The position numbers and the translations under genes are program-made. A DNA stretch of 61,441 bases, filler included, from Hausera hauseri (taxonomy: Eukaryota), in assembly GCA_046269625.1 (NCBI GenBank). It is 10 parts of 10 records of this genome, joined end to end, with 100 filler letters (N's around TTAATTAATTAA, not from the genome) between each part and the next. Parts side by side here need not be neighbours in the genome. Positions count along the whole stretch, not along the records: positions 6,091 to 12,859 come from JBJURY010067328.1; 9 more parts are not named here. One strand, given 5' to 3'. Of this stretch, positions 1,470 to 14,179 are shown in pieces. The stretch's first letter is position 1; each line of letters begins with the position of its first letter. The notes below the pieces were generated by a model that saw nothing but the letters and a program-made list of their open reading frames with translations, was not told the origin of the DNA and did not search any database.

Positions 1470-4400
1470 TTGAAGAAAATACAGATTACTAATCAACGAC
1501 TAACGGAAAATGACCGTAGGATATTGTACTGGAAGAGAATAGCTCGTAATATAGAGTCAAAATCGACAGTTTGGGGAACACAAGGAAGGAGCTCGTTCCA
1601 AAACCCAATAATACAAAAACCATTAATTAGAAACAATGCGCATAGTGTAGCAATTAACAACTTATACCCTAACGAAGAACTGAAACAGTTGACCGAGAAT
1701 ATCATTTCATCACCAGAAATAACGATAAACGGACACAAGATTTCTTCAATTATGCGACCAAAGGACGTGTCAAGTTGTTATGAAACAGTCATGGAAGGGA
1801 GACCCTTCACGAAAGTTACCAATGAAGATTGGGAAGTCTATGCCATAATCGACATCGGATCAGAGAAATTGTTTATTAAGTTAGAATCAATACCGCCGAC
1901 ACTACGAAAACAACTACAGCCAGCATCGTCGTCAGACCTAGGCAGCATAGGAGCCTTCGGGCAAGAATCCAAACCAAAATTTAAATGGAGTCCATTAGTT
2001 CAATTAATGGGTCAAATTCTTCGATATGAGTTCGCCGTAATGGACCAACTAACCGATGATGTAGTATTAGGTTGCAATATACTGAAACAATTACCCAATA
2101 TTGCAATAAACTTACAGACTGAAAAGTTACTAGAACTCGGACCAGTGAAAGGTATTAAGACAATGAAAGAGAGGAAACTAGGAGAAGTATGGATTTCCGT
2201 TGATGAAAATATTCCGCCCAGAACCGAAATGCTAATTTATGCCCAGATCCGAGAAGAGGACGAACAGCCGGTATATTTTGAGCCACAAGAAAATGTTAAT
2301 CCCAATATCATACTTAGTAACATTTTGACAAGAGTAACGACAGGAAGAGTACCAGTCAGATTAGTTAATAACGCACCAACTCCCGTAAAATTGTACGCCA
2401 ATACTACGTTGGGTCATACTTATAAGGTATGGGCAATAACAATCGAAGAAAAGCCATATAAGTATGTTGAGTTTCCACCTTACGTTGAAACTAAATTTTC
2501 ACCAGAAGCATATTGTCAATTTTACGAATTATTATGCAAATATAAGTCGATTATAGCCCAAAATGAAGAAGATATAGGCAGAGAAAAAACCTTAAGGTTA
2601 ACCATACCAATAAAAAAGAAACCTGGCTCCAACGACGAAATTGATTTGGAAGAGCAAAAGATGCCCAAATGGTATCCACCGCCTCATTCATTAAGGCCCG
2701 AAATAACAAAAGAAATAGAACGTATGTTGAAGGCTGACATAATACGACCAAGCTACCTATCTTGGTACTTGCTAATACTCATGATCAAGAAAAAGCGTAC
2801 CACTAAACATCGATTCTGTATAGATTACCGAGCTCTGAACACGCTTATGATGAAAGACTCATTCCCACTACCGTCGTAAAAGAAGCTCTATACAGATTAT
2901 CAGGAGTGAAATGGTTTACCACACTAGATTTACAATCCGGATACTGGCAAGTGCAAACTGAAGAAGACGATCGTTATAAAACAGCGTTCAAAACGCATGA
3001 CGGAGTCTATGAATTTAACGTCATGCCGTTCGGCATAACAACTGGCCCAGCTATCTTCACCAGAATGATGACTCTATGACGCATTCGCATATCTGGACGA
3101 TGTAATGATAGCATCAAGAACAGAAGAAGAACACCTAAAAGACATCGAAGATACTCTTATGCAATTGGAACAGGCATGATTAAAACGGAACCCAAAGAAA
3201 TGTAAATGGAAACAAAATGCGGTATCCTATCTTGGACATATAGTCGGGAAGGAGGGTCAAAACCAGATAAATCTCTACTAAATAATATATCGGATTGTAT
3301 ATAACCCCAAAATCAGAAAGAATTAAGACATTGGCTAGGCCTATGTGGGCTGTATGCCACTTATGTGCCAGACAATTCGAAAATAAATGCACCATTATAT
3401 CGGCTATTGAAAAAAGAAATCAAATGGAAATAACCCGCTGTGGAACAGAAAGCGTTCGATAAAATAAAGAAAATCCTAACAAGTGAACCAGTGTTGAGAT
3501 ACCCTGATTTCAATTTACCATTTATAATTAAAACAGACGCGAGTAAAGAGGGAATTGATTACGAATTGGCTCAGAAACGAGAGGACGAAGAATTGGAACA
3601 CCCAATTGCATATGGATGTCGATCGCTTAAGAAAGCTGAGAAAAACTATTCTGTCACTAAATTGGAGACACTAACTGTAAAGGAAGATTTAAGGCTCTTC
3701 AATGTTTATGTCTACGGAGAGAAAATCATTATAGTTACTGATCACAAGGCCGTTACAAGGTTAAAAGGACGGGCCAATAACCAGACATGTAGACTAAATC
3801 GGTGGATCGAGGAAATCTCCCGATGCAATATCGAATTTCAATATAAACCGGGAAGTAAACATATTGACGCAGATGCTCTATCAAGACTTAAGACAAAGAC
3901 AAGTACGATTACAACTATGAAGAAAGCCCAACTCGAGGAATTAGTAGAACGACAACGGGCCCTAACACTAAACAAAACAATTAAAATTTCTTCAGAACAA
4001 GCTAAAGACAAAGTCATCCAACAAATAGTCAAATTTGCCGAGCAAGATGAGGTACCAAATGGACGTCAGATAAAGAAACATTTACAAAGACACGGGCATA
4101 AATATTATGCATTGAATCAAGACAGTATTTTATATTACGAACGGAAGGGACGGAAACTGGTAGTTATTCCAAAGGGATTACGAACGGAAGTATTAATGGC
4201 CGAACACGATTCACATTTAGCTGGACACATGTCATGGAAGAAAACATTAGAAAAGATATTGAAAAAGTATTACTGGCCAAGTGTATATATCGATGTAAAA
4301 ATTGGGTGGACGCTTGTGAAGTCTGTGCGACAAAACAAAAGAAAGTGAAAAACTACATAGCAGAATTAAAACCGATTGACGTACCATACAGACCTATGCA

Positions 4401-5190
4401 GGCTATGTCTATGGATATAGTAGGACCTTTAACTACGACCCATAAAAATAACAAATACATTTTGACATGCGTGGACCGATTAACACATTTCGTTAAATTA
4501 ATTGCACTAACTGACCAGAAGGCAGAAACTTTAGCAGGCGCAGTAGTAAGGAAAGTTATTTGCAAAGGACCAAAAAGTCTGGGACGAATTTTTAGAAGGA
4601 ACGCAATTTGCTATAAATACTATTCCACATCCCGCCACAGGATTTACACCATTTTTTATGATGTATGGGCGCGAAGCGATATTACCCACGGACTTAGGGA
4701 TGACTCCGTATAACGCAAATCCAGAAGATTTAGAACCCAACTTCGCAGAAGTCTTGCAAATAAGGTTAAAAAATGTTGGGATATAGCGAAAAACCTCACT
4801 CTTGAGTATCAAGAGCAGTTTAAGAAACAATATGATAAGAAGGCCAAACCTCACGATTTAGAAAAAGAAAACTGGGTCTACGTGCACTATCCAGTCGCAA
4901 AGAAAGGTACGTTATTAAAACTTACTCGTACTGGACGAGGGCCTTACGAAGTTATTCGAACCACGCCAACTACTGTTTACATTAATAAAAACGGCAAAGA
5001 AGTAGTATTTATAAAAAGAGTTGTTAAAACAGAAATAAAACCAGAAAAACGTTACAATTTGCGATCTAGCTCGAATCAAGACAATAGGAAAACAAGAACA
5101 TCCTCTATGGTTAATAGGCCAATATCTTACGTACAGATAATATTAACATTATCATTATTCGCCTCTTATGTTCCCCAAACCCAAGCGTAA
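1470..5190 (+). mobile_element. pol: Degenerate Ty3/Gypsy pol: protease, dUTPase-like spacer, RT, RNase H, integrase
   Basis: Protease AIIDIGS; RT RFCIDYRALN...DSFPLP, LDLQSGYWQV, MPFG, YLDD; RNase H IKTDAS...AEKNYS...VTDHK...ADALSR; integrase H-x6-GH...C-x2-C, MDIVGP and GPY. Order PR-RT-RH-IN; several stops and frameshifts. Confidence 0.93.
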
Positions 5191-5990
5191 TGTGGGATGA
5201 TAGCGAATCTAGTTTAACAGATGTATATGGCATTAGCAAAAATGGAAGGCAAGCCAAAATTAAAGAGGAACAACAACACCTGGAAGGACGAAAAGACGTG
5301 GAAAATCTAAAAACAATGAAAGCCTATGACGCAGATTGGAAAAAGCCCTGTATTTGGTTTAAAACCAACAAAGCTACCAGAGAATATATGAAAATTCGTA
5401 TTAAGTTTACCGATCAAAATAGTGAAGGGATAAAAGATTGTGAGTTTGGATATTGAATTTATAGAAAATGTTGCGAACTAGATTTCGGCCGAACATACAG
5501 ATATACAATACTTATGTATTATTAGCCCTATGAAATCATCCGAGCGGACATACAACCTCAGATTGAAATAGTTATGCCCAAGCAATCTCTAACCGATGAC
5601 GTAAAATTATCCGACATAGTTCAAAGCACTGACCCTCAAATTAGATTATTATATGAAAATATAATTGAAGTTTCCAAGGATTTGGAACACGCATGTATCC
5701 AGATTAGAACCAAAACAAGACTAACCGAATCCTATCAGATCTGGGTCCAATTTATACCGTATGAAGAAACAAATCCGCCAGCAGAATACTGCGCTATTAG
5801 CCGATGGAACCCAAAGCCATGCTGTAAAATATCCAAAGGGTACAATTACGAAATACAATTCGACCTATATAAGGTCAGACCAAATCCGCCAAGTATATAC
5901 TTAAGAGGATATCGCTTAGGCAGACGAAATTGAAAGATCCCAATTAAAACGATGACAACGACTAGTACTACTGCAAAAATCGTCACGACG
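5107..5990 (+). pseudogene. Broken ORF(s) after integrase beginning with a signal-peptide-like segment; possible second env-like or accessory gene
   Basis: Integrase ends in RYNLRS, then MVNRPISYVQIILTLSLFASYVPQTQA (hydrophobic core, QA end), then Cys/Trp-containing fragments. No family recognised. Confidence 0.35.
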
Positions 5991-6090
5991 NNNNNNNNNN
6001 NNNNNNNNNNNNNNNNNNNNNNNNNNNNNNNNNNTTAATTAATTAANNNNNNNNNNNNNNNNNNNNNNNNNNNNNNNNNNNNNNNNNNNN
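5991..6090. other. Artificial contig-joining spacer (N44-TTAATTAATTAA-N44); the same spacer occurs at 12860-12959, 19246-19345, 24462-24561, 30512-30611, 37812-37911, 48237-48336, 53077-53176 and 57367-57466
   Basis: Nine identical 100-nt blocks whose core gives stop codons in all six frames. Adjacency across them has no biological meaning. Confidence 0.98.
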
Positions 6091-9000
6091 TCTACCTCGA
6101 CCTTGTTTGGTAAATATGGGACCAGCATAATCTATTCCTACTTTATCGAAGGCCCTTAACGGTTCTTCCAATCGAAATTCTGGAATCGGTGCCATTTGAA
6201 CTTTTACCCCCTTAGCATTATATCCTCTGCATGTCCTGCAATACGCGTTGTAACCTTTGACCAACCTCCTTAACCTGGGAATCCAGTACCTTTGTGAAAC
6301 CTCTGCTATTTGCTGATTTATTCCCCCACAAAACTTTAACTTTATATGATAGTGTTCTACGATTAATTTTGCTAATTTTCCTTTGTTGGATAGCATTACT
6401 AGGTATTTAAACTCCCACAGCAAGAATTCACTTGTTATTAACCTACTATTACGTCTAATTAGTCCATCCTCTGTAATTACGTGGTTAGCTTTTCTAATCA
6501 AACTCCTTACTTTTAGTTCTACTCCTTTTTCCAATGTTTTCAACTCTTCACGTAATTCTTTCTTTTGATCCTCCTTCAATAACAGTACTCTAGCTTTGTT
6601 GAATAACTGACTTTCATCCTCCTCATTTTGGTCGTTCGTTTGGTTGTTTTTCAATTCTTTAACTTTCATGATTATAAGTTGGCTCCATCTTGAGTTCTCT
6701 TGCTCTGTTTTCTCAAAGATAGTTCGTTCAGACGAAATTCTCTTTTGCAACGTTAATTTTTTCTTTTCTTTATCGAATCCTTCTTTAATAGTCGGTTGTA
6801 TAGGCCAACTTTCCTCTGGTTGTACTAAAACTTCCGGTCCATGTCACCATAACTGGTTCTCAGCTAGTTGAATTATTGTGGAACCCCTAGTTAAAACGTC
6901 TGCAGGGTTAATTTTCGTCGGAATATACCTCCACTGGGCTCCTTTTGACTTTTCTTGAATATAACTAATCCTATTCGCTACGAAAGTTTTGTATAGTTTT
7001 CAATGTTGTCTCACCCAGTGTAGTACGCCCATACTGTCGCTCCAATAACATAACTTCTTGTTGTCGTACTTTAGTGCAGTCGAAATCTTCTGTCCTACTT
7101 TTACTCCTGTCACCTCAGCTAGTAACTCTAATCGCGGTACTGAAACCACCTTTGTTGGCGATATTTTACTTTTCGCTACTACTATGTTGCTGGTTCTTCT
7201 ATCCCCTATAGTGACCAAGTAAACAACGGCTCCATAGGCATCTTTGGACGCATCACAGAATATATGTATTTCATATGGTGACTGAGCGGCTATTAGTACA
7301 CGTCTTATTCAAACTTTATCTAAATCTTGTTGTTCCGATACCCATTCTTTCGCCTTTTGATTAAGTGGTCTGGGAGTTGTTTGTCCCAATCTGCGCCATG
7401 CATCCACATCTCTTGTATAATCAACTTCCTTTTCATTAAGTAACTACTGAGAAACCCTAATGAATCAAATATTCTAGCTACTGAGCTCAAAAATTTTCTT
7501 TTTGTAGTAATTTCCTCTGATTGGACTCTTTTATCAAAGGTGAATACATCACTATTAGCATTCTATTTCATACCTAGCGTTTTTGTCTTCATCTCCTCAT
7601 CTACAATCTGATAACATGCAGATCTTTCATCTTCCGGTATGATTTCTCGCAATCTCTCGGAATTTGAGACCCATTTTCTCGCTGACATGCTGGCCTGACT
7701 CCCCAACCATTTTATATCACGGTACATCTTTACTGCCTCCTCTTCTGTTCTAACAGACACCAAGCTGTCATACATGTACGTCGCGTTTTTAACAACCCAT
7801 GCCGCTTCAGGTACACGCTCTGTGTGTTTTTTGGAGTTTACACGACTTACTAATTGTGCTAAGTATGGTGATGTATTTAATCCAAATACTAATCTTTGAA
7901 ATTCATAGACTTTCTCGCTATTTCCTTCCTTCCAAAGAAATCTTAAGTATTTTTGGTCTTCCTGTGCAACCCTAATTTGTAGAAACATTTTTGTAATGTC
8001 ACATACCATAGCAATTTCATATTTTCTAAACCTGATTAATATATCTACTAAGCCTAACTGCAACTTTGGTCCTTGGTGGATCATGTCATTCAAACTAATA
8101 CTCATACTTTTTGATGCTGCATCAAACACTATTCTAATTTTTGTTGTTTCTGCATCTCTTCTTACGACCGGAAAATGTGGTCAAATCCACCCCGTTGTAT
8201 TGGTTTTCAGTTCGTCTGTGACGTTCTTGATATACACCTTCCTTTCGTGCTCGTCTATTTGGTTCTGGTACCCCTCCTTCAAGTTCAAATCCTTTTCTAG
8301 TTTGTTCTCTAGCAACAATAACCGTCTCCTAGCAATTCTGTTGTTATCCGGCAACTCTTGTGGGTCTTTCTTCCATGGAATTTTGACTTCGTACCTGTGA
8401 TTAACGTACCTCATATCTCCCTTAGATCTCTATATTATTCCATCTTCTTCCTCTGTCCACTGTTGGTTCTTTTCGAACATATCTTCTAGTCTCCATAACC
8501 GCTCTAAATCATCCTTTAATTCTTCTCCACTTGAGAAGAAACATTTAATAAAGTTGGTTCGCTTCTGCAATGATCTCGTTGTTGATATTGGTCCGATACA
8601 GGTCCACCCTAGTGGTGTTAATCGAGCTACAGGTTCTCCTTCCTTCCCGGATATTTCTCTAATCGCTCGGTGAAGGTGACTATAATTTACTCCTATTAAA
8701 CCATCAACCTTCCCTGGCTTTATCACATTTGGAAAAGGTATCCCCTTTAAATGGTTCCATTTGTTTCTCTATATATTCCAATTGGTCGCGCTTAAATTAC
8801 CTACAACATTTTCGGTTGTCAGTGCTGAGATCTTCACTTTTAACTTTCTATTTAGACTATAGAGGTGAAATTCGATTCTTGCTGCGCTTCTCCTCTTCTT
8901 CTTACCACCTAAGACCTCTACCGATATCGATTATGGCTCCTGTTCTAACCGAAACCTTTCTGCTACTGAAGTACTAATGTAACTGTCAGTGCTAGCATCA

Positions 9001-9281
9001 TCTAGTAAAACATTGATCTTTTCTTCATACTCCCCGTTGCAAACAATCACCGGTATTGTCCTCAACGACACTTCATCTTTCTCTTCTGTGCTATGTCTTC
9101 CTGTTACATAACTCTTGTTTTGATCTTTCTTAAATTTTTCTGATTCATTTGAACTTCTGTCGCTTCCACTTTGTGAGGATTCTCGTAACTTGTCCGGTTT
9201 AATGCTATGTGACGTATGACTTCGATTACTAGTTCATCCAACTTGCTTTTCGCTCTTCTGCGAGAATGATTCTGTAGTTTC

Positions 9282-9434
9282 ATGCGCGAACTGACATTTA
9301 TCGCCGTTTCTGCAATTTTCCTGTTGATAATATTTGCATAGCTTGTTTCTGTTTTCCTTCTTTTCTTCCTTACTTTCGTATGAATATTTACATTTCTTCC
9401 CGAAAGTGCAATTCCCTTTTGCGAACTCCCAACA
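9282..9434 (-). other. Tandem CCCH-type zinc fingers in BEL/Pao Gag
   Basis: Manual translation gives CWEFAKGNCTFGKKCKYSY and CKYYQQENCRNGDKCQFAH (C-x7-C-x5-C-x3-H). The first finger has Tyr at the His position. Confidence 0.85.
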
Positions 9435-10545
9435 CGCTCCTTTAGTAATTGGGAACTTCTTGACCCCAGTAAAGTGACTGTAATGCTGATTTACCCTTTT
9501 TCTTCTGTACCCTGACTTTAGCGGTGCTCGTGGCCTTGGAAATGTTTATAATCATTAGTTTTCGCATATTCTCGCTCTCTTTTCTCTAATACATCTATTC
9601 CATGCGCGGATTCCTCTGATACACGGTGAATATGGGCATCTTCTTCCAACCAATATTTTAATTCGCTTATAACTTCTTCTTTACAGTAACTTCGCCGGTA
9701 CCTTTCCCATTGACTTATTAATGTCTCCGGTAACTTCTCTAGTATAATTTTATATAGTAGCCCACTATCAAGGTCATTCTCTTTGTTTAGGTTTCTAAGT
9801 CGCACAACAACGGCTTCCAATAATGATACTAAGTTGTCTATCTGCTTGACATTATTCAGCTTTACTTTCTCGAACTTTCGAATTTCATCTATCAACGCAG
9901 CGAAATTTCTTTGCTTTCCACCATAACACCTTTCGAGTTTCTGCAGTACTGTTTCGTACGATGTTTCGCTGATCCCAAAATTTGCCACTAACTTCTTTGC
10001 TTCACCACTAAGACAAACCTCTAATTTTATCTGCTTTTCTACTGCTGATACTGGAGTTCGATGTACACAAACTTCAAACGTTTGCCTCCATTTTTCGTAA
10101 TCAGCTACGTGTCCACTAAATTTTGGCAATTCTACACTACTAAAGCGAGGACACAAATTATCTGTAACTGAAGTCTCCGTGGTTTTTTGTCGACTTCTTT
10201 CCTGTTCGCTCCGATTAGCGGCTATACACCGTAATCCTGCCACTGCATCGGCATTTAGTTGACTTAGGACCTCTCTAGTTCGTCATTTCTGTTTTGTAGT
10301 TTCGCCATGATTTGGAGCTCCAATATTTCCGACACTGTTTGTTCATACGTGTCACAAAATTCGTCGTAGGTCTTTCGAAGTTCTTCCCCTGAATTATCCA
10401 CGTATAATTTCCCGTGCATATTTTCTAATTGTGACTTCAATTTGTCCTTCATCAGAAATCTCGTCTCGAATTCTTTTGTTAATCGCTTTGTGTTTTCTGA
10501 ACTAGCCTTAAGTTTTTTCTCATAATTTTTGCTGGAGAGTTTGCT

Positions 10546-10767
10546 TCCTCCTTTAAGACTAAGGACTAGATGCACAGTAGCTCCATGCGTGAGATTCTCC
10601 ACGTCTTCATCGGTCATTATTCTCCTTTCTCGATAGAATAACCTCAGTAAATCCGCTGGTATTTTCGATTTTATTTTTATTTCGGTAAGCAACTCGTTTA
10701 AAGATTTGACTTTCTCTAAGTTTATTTCCATTAACGTACCTTCTCTTAATTTTATAAATAGCTGTTT
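10546..10767 (-). other. Ubiquitin-like domain at the N-terminus of BEL/Pao Gag
   Basis: The 74 aa KQLFIK...IPADLLRLFY...ATVHLVLSLKGG aligns colinearly with ubiquitin MQIFVK...IPPDQQRLIF...STLHLVLRLRGG. Confidence 0.88.
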
Positions 10768-11769
10768 AAGATTTCTATTTGTTGTCGTAGTTCCCTCAAA
10801 TTTCTCTGACAATTTGGGAAGCGTGATTTAAATTTTCTATCTTCTTGATTATGCCCTCTTCTCCTAGCCTATATCATTCTTTTCCTCCTTATGTTCTTTT
10901 GAATAACGTATGTCTCTTCTTCTCATTATTTTATTATTTAGCCGGGTTCCTTCTAGATCCATGGCCACTATACATTAAATCGAAAGGGACTCTGCACCAG
11001 ACGTCCAAGGCAGCATCATCAACACGGAACTCAAACTATTTTCCCATTTGTTTACTCTTATTTGGCTAGCTGGGTTCACGGTTTGGTTTTTGCCGCAAAC
11101 AAATGAAAAAACTTTAAACCATTCAAAGAGGAAGATCCGAACACAAGGAAGGTGGAAGGATACCTCGAAAGAACAAAGAGCCGTGATCGCTACTTGCATA
11201 TCAGGGTGCAGAGCAGCAACCACGCTCTGCTACCATATGATGATGAATCTATATAGATATTATTTCGCGTAAGTACCTCAAGATCGAATATATCCCCTGT
11301 TAAGTAAATCTTTCTTTCCATGACACCATTATTCCTGTCAGATCTCGAGGTGCCATTGATGATTTCCGCGAACTCACATATCCCTAAACCCATCTCGATT
11401 CCCATAAGGCCCAATTCCCAGGTCCGTTTCTCTTTTATTACCCCTTTTATTTTCGACTTTGATCCCACAAAATACGATCCATAAAGTCGATTGAATTCCC
11501 CAAAAGTGTTTATCATTATATAAAAATATAAAAAAACATTTAATTGCATATAAAAAAGACATTTACGTTACTTTTTGCACTATACATGGCCATTTTTATC
11601 GGAGTGCCCCTCTCCGGGGAAATATATCCACCTTTAAAAACTAAATTCCATACAAGCACACCGATTTTATCAATCATTCTGACAACAGAGCCCAGTCTGA
11701 CATTCAGTAACCCAGAATAACAATAACGAGAACTAACAATAATATTTAAATAACACTGGAATACCTTCA

Positions 11770-12300
11770 ACAGAAATGTGCATGATTTATAACCCGGTTT
11801 TGCAAACTTTTTTCTAGTATTCACTGCACCAGAATGAGTACCATATTTGAGAAGAACAAAATCTCGATACCAATTAGATTTCATATCCCCACTACCAATC
11901 TTAGCAGCAAAAATAACAACTTCTTTTAAACAATCTGTATATTCTCTAAGACCAAGCATAATTTCCTCCCTATTTTTATCACTCGGTATCTTTGCTACAA
12001 ACAAATGAAGATCTGGAGTAGACCGATGCACTCTTATTCTTTTTCTAGGTCGGATTTTTTTGTTGTCCAACATATCTCTGCATTTTATAGCATACTCTTT
12101 TATCTTGTACATAACAAGTGCAAATCTTCTCTTTCTTATTACTTTTGACGAATACACATAATACGTTTCAAGCATAAGTGACAATCCATAAGTGCAATTT
12201 TCTCAAATCATTTTCAATAAGTTTCATGGAAAGATTTGGTAAAAATTCACTCCAATCTGGTGGTGGATCATAATGAATTTTCTTTGATTTGAAAATGCAT
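11770..12300 (-). pseudogene. Diverged hnRNP Q/R (SYNCRIP)/A1CF-family RRM gene fragment
   Basis: KIHYDPPPDW; FALVMY...LDNKKIRPRKRIRVHRS; LFVAKIPSDKNREEI...YTDCLKEVVIF...RDFVLLKYGTHSGA parallels hnRNP R RRM1-RRM2 (LFVGSIPKSKTKE...RGFCFLEYEDHKTA). Frameshifted. Confidence 0.65.
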
Positions 12301-14179
12301 GATTTGGAAAGTAAATTAGTTGATTGGGACAGAGATAGTGATTGAAGGTTTCTTTGCTTTTCTCGATTGGAATCCTCTACATTTCTTGGTGAGATTCTAC
12401 ACACATTCTCCAATTTCTTCTGCATTGACTGGTATATAAATTATGGCAAATTTCACAACGTTTAGCATAAAATTTGACTTTTCCCAACTTGTCCGTAACA
12501 GGACTTTTAAAACAGTCATTTGAAATTTGTAATTCATTTTTTTTCAATAATTTATCAATTTATTATTCAAAATGCATAATTTTAAATGATTTATAAGCAA
12601 TACATATCTTCAGCTTTATAATTAGACATATGTTAACATCCATGTTGACCTGGTTCTATCCTTTCTTCATTTATATGGGAATACAGTACACAGCAAACAA
12701 AAAAGTCTATACAGACAGGCACTTGAGAGATTGAAAGAAATAGGTCAGAAATATAAAGTGGGCAATAGAACAAATGGAATAGAAATTGGCACTGCATGGA
12801 TTCAATCCATCATCCCTACAACACTGATACAATGTCACTGTACACTGCCAACATGCTATNNNNNNNNNNNNNNNNNNNNNNNNNNNNNNNNNNNNNNNNN
12901 NNNTTAATTAATTAANNNNNNNNNNNNNNNNNNNNNNNNNNNNNNNNNNNNNNNNNNNNGAAGACAATTTGGAAAGCATAGAAACAAAGCAAACAAATAA
13001 AAATGGATGTATTTTACAGCTAAGAAATGCTGCATGTAGGCAGTATCGTAAATGTCTGGTTTTTTTTAGCGCCTGCAATGTCATCAAATGATAAAAAATA
13101 AGGGGAGAAACTATTTTGTTTACTACAAGCCCTGAAACTTTTGTGCTTGTATATTTATTCTTTACACATTTTAAAAATGTACCAGCTCTTGGAGTCTGCA
13201 CACGATCAGGTGTGAAATTTTGACAGTTAGGATGCGTTTTGGAGTAAACTCGGACAAGAGGTTTTAAATATGAAAGGTTACAGGTAGTTCAATGTCTGGC
13301 GATGATTGCATTCTGTTTTTACACTTGTTAAAGCCAGCCCTCGTTACCTTTTTAATTACCTGAGGCAAGGTGGAGAAATAGCCGCGAAGAGTCAAAATGA
13401 TGGAAATGCTGAACGAACTTTTTTTGTTTTTTTTTTTTTTTAAATCGTTTTTTCAAAAGCTAGTTTAAAGTTGCTATATTGATAACTGTAAACTTTAATC
13501 TAAATAATTGGTTACTTTATGATCGTTGATTTTAGCAATCATTTTGTTTGTGCCAAACCAGAGCACATCTAAACAAAGCAGTGCTGACACGAAACATCCT
13601 CTACACTAAGGCAACATGCTACAGAGAGGACTGTCATGTAAAGATTGAAAGGCAGACATTATCAAACAAATGTGTAAAGGCATCATCACGAACCAGGAGA
13701 TGAACGGTTTCACATCCTTCGACAATGATTTCGACACCTCTTCAGATTTCATGACACTCTACCGGTGATCCGGAGTCACATCCCGCCGCACTGAAGGGTG
13801 TAATTCTCTGTGATGTCCTGACACAGGCGGCAGAGTAATTAAAGATTTAGCTTCTGCACCAGCGGCAGAGTGAGTTCATTTCCTTTGATGCCGAAATCGT
13901 AGTTGCCATTGAGCTTTCAAAAATCATACTTGACTTAATCACAATTATCATATTTTATCTATGACAGAATCATATCACATTTATAAAGCTACGTTATTAA
14001 AATATTTCAGACAAATCGCAGGAGCCCTCGTTATAATGGCACAGTCTTTATCAAACATCTACAGCACGAAATGAAAAAAAACAGAAAACTCTTAATAAAT
14101 GAAACAATTATAAATTAAAATACGAATACATGAAAGTATTTTAATGATAGAACTCAAAGAGACTAGAAATATGCTTCTA

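Follow-up and report, generated by a model that had tools for sequence, protein, structure and literature searches.

A ubiquitin-like domain at the start of a BEL/Pao retrotransposon Gag appears to be an inherited module of its clade

Results

Layout of the element

In the present work, we describe a ubiquitin-like domain (Ubl) that opens the gag region of a retrotransposon in a 61,441-nucleotide stretch of DNA (hereafter the window), joined from ten parts of the Hausera hauseri assembly GCA_046269625.1. The element, referred to as the focal copy, lies on the minus strand of the part derived from JBJURY010067328.1 (positions 6091-12859 of the stretch) and is, as judged from its domains, a long terminal repeat (LTR) retrotransposon of the BEL/Pao type (Belpaoviridae). 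It combines a DUF1759 Gag with a pol region in the order protease, reverse transcriptase (RT), A17 region and integrase (Pfam and tblastn), and long BEL/Pao polyproteins map colinearly over 10228-6091 (tblastn). Read along the minus strand, a primer-binding site (PBS) and a leader of ~400 nt are followed by the Ubl, a helical linker, DUF1759, CCCH fingers, protease, RT, A17 and integrase (ORF, open reading frame; aa, amino acids; P numbers denote database relatives introduced below):

11218..11235, minus strand: PBS, complementary to the 3' end of initiator tRNA-Met (TGGTAGCAGAGCGTGGTT), preceded by ...CATCA + TA
10813..11217, minus strand: leader between PBS and ORF1, with an in-frame TAA at 10830-10828 and no in-frame ATG before the Ubl
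10546..10764, minus strand: Ubl, ORF1 aa 17-89, ending in LSLKGG with the GG codons at 10551-10546 (Pfam, alignment, model)
10267..10545, minus strand: Ser90 and helical N-terminal linker of Gag (aa 90-182), sharing the frame of the Ubl; closing TAA at 10266-10264
10267..10282, minus strand: the one stretch shared by the ORF1 and DUF1759 frames, where the frame break is located (frame reading)
9689..10120, minus strand: DUF1759 Gag core (PF03564, E 4.6e-21); frame open over 10282-9521, stop at 9520-9518
9282..9443, minus strand: two CCCH zinc fingers in nucleocapsid position, in a third frame (zf-CCCH_4, E 4.1e-16, 2 stretches; tblastn frames)
8265..9071, minus strand: protease region, DUF1758-like (tblastn of P0046 aa 519-786 and P0002 aa 405-705), with in-frame stops starting at 8933, 8771 and 8432
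7695..8039, minus strand: RT domain (RVT_1, E 1.1e-10)
7033..7200, minus strand: 'Pao retrotransposon peptidase' (Peptidase_A17) region (PF05380, E 5.4e-11), past the frame change near 7353-7383
6214..6378, minus strand: integrase zinc-binding domain (Integrase_H2C2, E 2.5e-7); the edge of the piece at 6091 cuts the element

Over its 18 bases, the PBS matches the tRNAMet(i) PBS printed in PMC1797187 at 16/18 positions, and its first 12 bases (TGGTAGCAGAGC) occur a single time in the window against 0.02 occurrences expected by chance. The bases that precede it mark a possible LTR end at 11238. A repeat search found no LTR pair in the piece, as expected for a piece that ends inside the integrase, and Rfam at the gathering threshold returned no match there. 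Since the Ubl is located downstream of the PBS, it lies inside the element.

The ubiquitin-like domain of the focal copy

ORF1 comprises 182 codons (10812..10264, minus strand), and the ubiquitin-like domain that a preliminary description of this DNA had placed in the same interval was found there, with correct coordinates and on the minus strand. Apart from a single gap of two residues, amino acids 17-89 are colinear with residues 2-76 of ubiquitin, and Gly88-Gly89 coincide with G75-G76. Identity to ubiquitin amounts to about 21/73 (29%), counted by eye from printed alignments; again by eye, the positions of the ubiquitin hydrophobic core are all occupied by hydrophobic residues. In searches, the domain scored 23-27 bits against mono-ubiquitin chains (E about 3e-5 to 6e-4), about the same against NEDD8, and up to about 32 bits against ubiquitin-fusion chains, where the alignment crossed and passed the junction. 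The Pfam ubiquitin profile PF00240 was matched over positions 1-71 of 72 (E 1.1e-4, 22.4 bits). At the surface, several residues differ from ubiquitin (L8R, I44F, K48R, K63H, R72S and R74K).

An AlphaFold2 model of ORF1 from a 9-row alignment has a beta-grasp fold over aa 17-86 (predicted local distance difference test, pLDDT, 85-92), a disordered stretch directly after the GG (aa 87-103) and helices at 105-136 and 142-172 (pLDDT 86-93). Foldseek superimposed this model on ubiquitin with a target-normalised TM-score (template modelling score) of 0.82 and a root-mean-square deviation of 2.1 Å over 73 residues. The alignment included ubiquitin-bearing relatives, so that the model leans towards the ubiquitin fold and is not fully independent evidence; from the single sequence, AlphaFold2 gave a pLDDT of 40 and no usable fold. 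Structural look-alikes of ORF1 in the ESM Atlas were weak Ubl clusters with scores of at most 0.87.

As the preliminary description had stated, the GG is retained and is followed in frame by a serine (Ser90) and a helical Gag N-terminus, here a segment of 93 residues (aa 90-182). Given the base composition of the piece, 188 stop-free codons would arise by chance with a probability of about 2e-7, and the ORF1 frame is therefore not a chance product. By sequence criteria, aa 17-89 of ORF1 are a genuine ubiquitin-derived domain at the N-terminus of a BEL/Pao Gag.

Relatives with ubiquitin in the Gag frame

A HMMER scan of 1.84 billion representative proteins with the DUF1759 ORF (ORF2; ORF1 and ORF2 were always used as separate queries) yielded 3137 homologues at E<=1e-3, the best 150 of which were surveyed. 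In six of these 150, the Gag ORF also encoded ubiquitin or just its C-terminal tail, giving a positive outcome to the survey of BEL/Pao gags for an N-terminal Ubl that had been proposed for this locus. In four of the six, PF00240 lies upstream of DUF1759 in one ORF and scores above its 25.4-bit cut-off, and the other two (P0068 and P0002) start within the C-terminal part of ubiquitin:

P0051: ubiquitin 80-151 (97 bits, E 4.4e-28), DUF1759 286-423; 119 bits to ubiquitin residues 1-76; junction LRLRGG-S
P0086: ubiquitin 19-90 (78 bits, E 3.5e-22), DUF1759 229-373; 58% identity to ubiquitin by eye; junction LRLRGG-S
P0046: ubiquitin cut N-terminally (43 bits, E 3.8e-11), DUF1759 and DUF1758; junction LKLRGG-G
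P0148: degraded ubiquitin (29 bits, E 6.9e-7), DUF1759; junction RLKEG-N
P0068: ORF start inside the ubiquitin C-terminus (...LLLRLKGG-M); junction LRLKGG-M
P0002: second-closest relative, 41% identity over the match; MAFKLKGG-S, linker and DUF1759 in one frame; junction KLKGG-S

The corresponding junction of the focal copy reads LSLKGG-S. The ubiquitin of P0051 is near-canonical (80% identical by eye), with 6/7 lysines and I44/H68 kept. Both halves of ORF1 have counterparts in these proteins: the focal Ubl can be aligned to the ubiquitin of P0051 and of P0086, and the focal linker to the linkers of the relatives (e.g. YEQTVSEILELQ with YEKTFSEILEEL of P0002). All six are uninterrupted across the region equivalent to the frame break of the focal copy. 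A Ubl outside the gag frame of intact copies would have refuted the preliminary description; relatives contain ubiquitin, helical linker and DUF1759 in one ORF.

The remaining members of the best 150 were without ubiquitin, both in a Pfam search of the 78 with 70 aa or more ahead of their DUF1759 match and when a local hidden Markov model of ubiquitin was run on all 150. Nor was PF00240 among the common families of the DUF1759 clusters that the ESM Atlas returned for P0086. Word-indexed protein searches with ORF1 and with ORF2, limited by the word index and a length window, gave no match; a protein search with an alignment (A1) recovered the input proteins and one distant polyprotein only, and scans of viral contigs with A1, P0046 and P0002 found nothing. 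The sole locus from a metagenome search with P0086 (JAEEGL016063698.1, 240-1787, plus strand) was rejected as unrelated and not BEL/Pao. It is an AT-rich metagenome contig whose 515-aa ORF has an N-terminal Ubl without a GG tail (...LQLALKKRVY).

Phylogeny of the Gag core

Trees were built from the DUF1759 region only, without ubiquitin columns. In a quick tree of 134 rows, which left out 17/150 matches shorter than 150 residues to the query, the focal copy falls into one clade with P0001, P0002, P0018, P0051, P0086, P0046 and the long-branch P0140 (SH-like approximate likelihood-ratio test, SH-aLRT, 95), with the other 126 rows outside. For a careful tree of 57 rows, P0148 and P0068 were added and 47 outgroup rows were hand-picked across the clades of the quick tree. 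Here, the 7 ubiquitin-bearing rows together with P0001 and P0018, whose ORFs begin too late to show an N-terminus, make up exactly one clade (ultrafast bootstrap 90, SH-aLRT 69) that is present in 88% of the bootstrap trees and is matched by 0/500 label shuffles. No ubiquitin was found in the other 47 rows of the careful tree, nor in the 126 rows outside the clade of the quick tree. It is this Gag tree on which the placement of the focal copy in the ubiquitin-Gag branch rests.

P0140, from an ENA contig of 6.5 kb, is a DUF1759 protein without ubiquitin that starts with 'MSKL...' where the focal Gag would begin after the GG ('SKLSS'). We considered it as a member of the clade that lacks ubiquitin and drew no conclusion, as its long branch moves between trees.

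Within the clade, the element ubiquitins share departures from the canonical sequence (by eye), namely Q40H in P0051, P0086 and P0148, L67I in four and P19S in three of them. Between pairs of members from outside the window, the ubiquitin domain is 34-57% identical versus 21-41% for DUF1759, and the focal Ubl is an outlier, 18-27% identical to the other element ubiquitins. In most lineages, ubiquitin is no less conserved than the capsid core; in the focal one it is relaxed.

Other copies and decay of the focal copy

Run X1, the one public run in which the sequence occurs (Logan contigs), contains 2998 contigs on 6900-12859 at an identity of at least 80%, 211 of them at 99% or more. Their summed depth is about 1400-1575 in the Ubl bins and about 3900-11600 in the bins of the linker and DUF1759, compared with 2.35 in the final bin, which appears to be unique. 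This run therefore contains the Ubl stretch in multiple copies, and ubiquitin is also found in relatives, so that the one-off insertion named in the preliminary description as the finding that would overturn its claim was not what we observed. At positions 10560 and 10606, all 7-8 crossing contigs agree mutually, against the focal copy. Small length changes occur among the copies at 10789-10808, 10826 and 10860, and single-base length differences lie near the frame changes of pol (9496 in 44% of the depth; 7353-7356 in 10-27%).

The focal copy is a dead element. Its pol frames (6091-9434) contain 9 in-frame stops in 1125 codons, and comparison with long BEL/Pao polyproteins by tblastn places two further frame changes near 9520-9434 and 7383-7353, in addition to the one between ORF1 and ORF2. 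The fusion of ubiquitin to Gag proposed in the preliminary description stands for the focal copy as far as Ubl and helical segment share a frame, but the DUF1759 core is frame-shifted and a start codon is missing; the single frame for ubiquitin, linker and DUF1759 that marks the branch is therefore absent from this copy. We regard the shifted DUF1759 frame as probable decay of this particular copy. Programmed -1 frameshifting from ORF1 to ORF2 was considered and rejected: no slippery heptamer is visible by eye in the 16-nt overlap, the relatives are continuous, and the copy has 2 more frame changes and 9 stops.

The gag frames (ORF1 and ORF2; 9518-10812, 443 codons), on the other hand, are free of in-frame stops, which at the stop rate of pol has a probability of about 0.03. 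Depth in run X1 is likewise higher over gag than over pol. Together, these observations hint at gag-only derivatives or at selection on gag.

Surroundings and further features

The 5' boundary of the element was placed tentatively, from contig depth in run X1. Upstream of the PBS, the piece continues with one further feature:

11238..12670, minus strand: moderately repeated stretch that holds an ORF resembling an RNA recognition motif (RRM) (summed depth 54-643 versus 2.35 in the last bin, run X1)

This stretch may be the 5' LTR or another repeat; for its moderately repeated portion at 11278-12670, an LTR, another repeat or a host gene fragment are candidates. The open frame in question has 214 codons (11543-12184, minus strand) with an RRM of the hnRNP-R/Q/A1CF type (PDB 2dis_A, E 3.7e-4; Pfam RRM_1, E 0.017). 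Besides, the highest summed depth in run X1, 22948, is reached at 11079-11277, where the PBS and the beginning of the leader lie, far above the remaining element. Here, 20 contigs break off at 11200, and a complementary GCAGAGC...GCTCTGC hairpin follows the PBS. The peak may reflect a leader common to other families or a derived short repeat.

The fingers at the nucleocapsid position are of the C-x8-C-x5-C-x3-H type, as in P0002, the closest long relative, and P0046 and P0086 of the ubiquitin clade have the usual CCHC knuckle there. The CCCH fingers may represent a second host-like module, swapped into the sub-lineage of the focal copy and P0002. At residues 920-993 of P0002, a CFAP58-type coiled coil (E 1.7e-18) follows the protease region in place of RT; either P0002 is a truncated element that became joined to host sequence, or the ORF call is chimeric.

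Discussion

The present work identified a ubiquitin-derived domain at the N-terminus of a BEL/Pao Gag, and the distribution of such domains over the Gag trees makes it very likely that a BEL/Pao clade has inherited ubiquitin as a module of its Gag. An account that joins this inherited ubiquitin-Gag module to processing by host deubiquitinases is, as a whole, probably the best explanation of our observations. The branch encodes, in one frame, ubiquitin (76 aa) ending in GG, a Ser, Gly or Met, a helical linker of about 110-135 aa and the capsid-like DUF1759 core; in the focal lineage, the fold and the GG have been kept while the sequence has drifted to about 29% identity with ubiquitin. According to this account, the ubiquitin-Gag precursor would be translated from ubiquitin's own start and, before cleavage, ubiquitin might act in cis as an enhancer of Gag folding or yield. 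Host deubiquitinases would then cut after the GG, as they do in polyubiquitin and in ubiquitin-ribosomal-protein fusions, freeing the ubiquitin (or Ubl) and a Gag with a defined, non-destabilising N-terminus, with mature Gag starting at the residue after the GG.

Unless proline comes next, deubiquitinases cleave N-terminal ubiquitin fusions such as polyubiquitin, Ub-eL40 and Ub-eS31 behind G76, either co-translationally or shortly afterwards, and ubiquitin raises the yield of its fusion partner. In the proteins described here, the residue after the GG is never proline: it is Ser in the focal copy, P0002, P0051 and P0086, Gly in P0046 and Met in P0068. None of these three is a destabilising N-terminus in the Arg/N-degron pathway. 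We infer cleavage by the host because the C-terminal tail is kept, Pro never follows, the model has a disordered stretch after the GG, and ubiquitin fusions are known to behave in this manner. On these grounds, we lean—by analogy with the cellular fusions and with some reserve—towards deubiquitinase cleavage as the way in which the Gag ubiquitin acts.

[quoted passage not shown] There is precedent in that ubiquitin in an engineered fusion with retroviral Gag can stand in for late-domain function in budding (PMC2958808), and the near-canonical ubiquitin of P0051 would suit a need to be recognised as real ubiquitin. However, GG followed by Ser, Gly or Met is a normal substrate of cellular deubiquitinases, and natural UBL domains that remain uncleaved usually lack the GG. 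Moreover, the focal lineage has altered L8 and I44 of the main recognition patch, and no env gene is visible in the piece, which ends in integrase. We therefore consider a persistent cis signal unlikely. The loss of R72, L8 and I44 with retention of fold and GG instead fits a pro-domain role better than that of a conjugatable ubiquitin.

A further, more tentative proposal builds on deubiquitinase processing: the branch may long have carried its own ubiquitin segment at the start of gag, with host deubiquitinases as an extra maturation enzyme, and in some lineages, including the focal one, this segment may by now have become a private, ubiquitin-like pro-domain with nothing but the fold and the GG retained.

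As to the origin of the module, we favour one capture at the base of the BEL/Pao branch and subsequent inheritance, because the ubiquitin-bearing proteins form one clade on Gag-only trees, share derived residues and display the pattern of identities reported above. Within BEL/Pao, where the preliminary description had spoken of a separate capture in such an element, the sequences thus point to a clade-inherited event rather than a copy-specific one. One could also imagine several independent captures, e.g. by template switching onto polyubiquitin mRNA, with the focal Ubl as an event of its own; ubiquitin mRNA is abundant, and the graded identity to canonical ubiquitin (80% in P0051, 58% in P0086 and 29% in the focal copy, by eye) could mean captures of different ages. 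Yet the ubiquitin-bearing Gags form one clade on a tree without ubiquitin columns, and fusion point, linker and linker length are homologous across members. Besides, the element ubiquitins have derived residues in common, and the residue after the GG is not the Met, Ile or Ala of host genes, except in P0068. Repeated capture consequently strikes us as improbable. A chance juxtaposition or artefact (insertion beside a host ubiquitin-like exon, or a chimeric contig) could account for a focal copy that lacks a start codon and has its Ubl ORF out of frame with DUF1759, but is hardly credible for a Ubl that is found downstream of the PBS, shares its frame with a linker that has homologues among the Gag N-termini of other elements, is multi-copy in run X1 and recurs in the same architecture in 6 independent database proteins.

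Several observations weigh against an inherited, deubiquitinase-processed module and should be kept in mind. In the Pfam scan suggested by the preliminary description, the focal Ubl matched nearly the whole of PF00240 but, at 22.4 bits, stayed under the gathering score of 25.4 bits. With L8, I44, K48, K63, R72 and R74 all altered, its recognition by ubiquitin-specific hydrolases is not assured, and the tail of P0148 (RLKEG) is degenerate. No in-frame ATG precedes the focal Ubl: a TAA stands at 10830-10828, and the first ATG encodes Met28, within the domain. The frame of the DUF1759 core differs from that of ORF1, and the two open frames share 10282-10267 only; in the 12 length-difference rows covered, of 24 for run X1, none lies at 10264-10285, and the break may be private to this copy or family-wide. 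In the same run, the Ubl bins have fewer contigs and lower depth than the adjoining bins of the linker and DUF1759, and one contig skips 10366-10804, albeit weakly (the shorter side spans 25 nt). Support for the ubiquitin clade is moderate, and two long branches, P0140 and P0097 (the latter likewise without ubiquitin), shift between trees. Finally, the relatives are unnamed ORFs on JGI/ENA metagenome contigs of 1.5-4.4 kb or one UniParc entry, and no LTRs were seen with them.

It is rare for an LTR retrotransposon to fix an additional domain of host origin, and every such case reveals a host pathway on which the element depends. Here, a ubiquitin stands exactly at the N-terminus of Gag and its cleavage site is kept, over a divergence that leaves the capsid core of most members only 21-41% identical; this suggests that Gag production has come to incorporate ubiquitin processing by the host. 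In practical terms, ubiquitin-Gag is a clean marker for a BEL/Pao sub-lineage. Its ubiquitins, about 80%, 58% and 29% identical to the canonical protein, also form a natural series that evolves under constraint at the level of the element, not of the host. Should Gypsy elements carry an independent equivalent, which the preliminary description reports from sequence outside this piece, this would make a strong case for a general advantage; candidates named in that description are host deubiquitinase processing, better translation or folding, and protection of Gag from degradation. If the private pro-domain is real, the branch would be the lineage-wide retroelement counterpart of the sporadic ubiquitin captures by pestiviruses, and a natural example of the UBL-helical-retropepsin layout of Ddi1-type host proteins.

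Full-text literature searches, whose coverage excluded most subscription journals, found no prior description of a ubiquitin-Gag retrotransposon; one candidate (PMC11640988) proved irrelevant. With ordinary BEL/Pao (Belpaoviridae) Gags, the branch shares the DUF1759 core, the helical N-terminal region, the protease-RT-A17-integrase order and the tRNA PBS, whereas it adds ubiquitin at the extreme N-terminus and, in the sub-branch of the focal copy and P0002, has CCCH fingers, not CCHC. Cellular ubiquitin-fusion precursors (polyubiquitin, Ub-eL40/UBA52, Ub-eS31/RPS27A and FUBI-eS30), which are known to be processed by deubiquitinases and in which ubiquitin acts on its partner much as a chaperone would, likewise have an N-terminal ubiquitin that ends in GG and sits head-to-tail on an unrelated protein. 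In our case, however, the partner is a retrotransposon capsid protein, the gene resides on a mobile element, and no host ubiquitin is nearly as diverged as the focal Ubl.

Among viruses, cytopathic pestiviruses such as bovine viral diarrhoea virus (BVDV) carry insertions of host ubiquitin directly before NS3, whose N-terminus is created by host ubiquitin hydrolases. There too, a replicating element captured host ubiquitin directly upstream of a protein of its own, but those insertions are sporadic, strain-level recombinants of an RNA virus, whereas ubiquitin-Gag is inherited by a branch of LTR retrotransposons and opens the polyprotein. Engineered ubiquitin-Gag fusions, which can replace retroviral late domains, resemble the module in having ubiquitin in cis to Gag, where it is functional in particle release (PMC2958808). 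They differ in being artificial and retroviral, with a ubiquitin designed to stay attached. By layout, Ddi1/Ddi2 come close as well: an N-terminal UBL is followed by a helical domain and a retropepsin-like protease (PMC7072860), the latter an aspartic protease of the retroelement type. These are, however, host genes without Gag/DUF1759, RT or integrase. As far as is known, this UBL is no ubiquitin that ends in GG and can be cleaved off. None of the systems compared here is a lineage-wide, naturally encoded ubiquitin at the N-terminus of a retrotransposon Gag.

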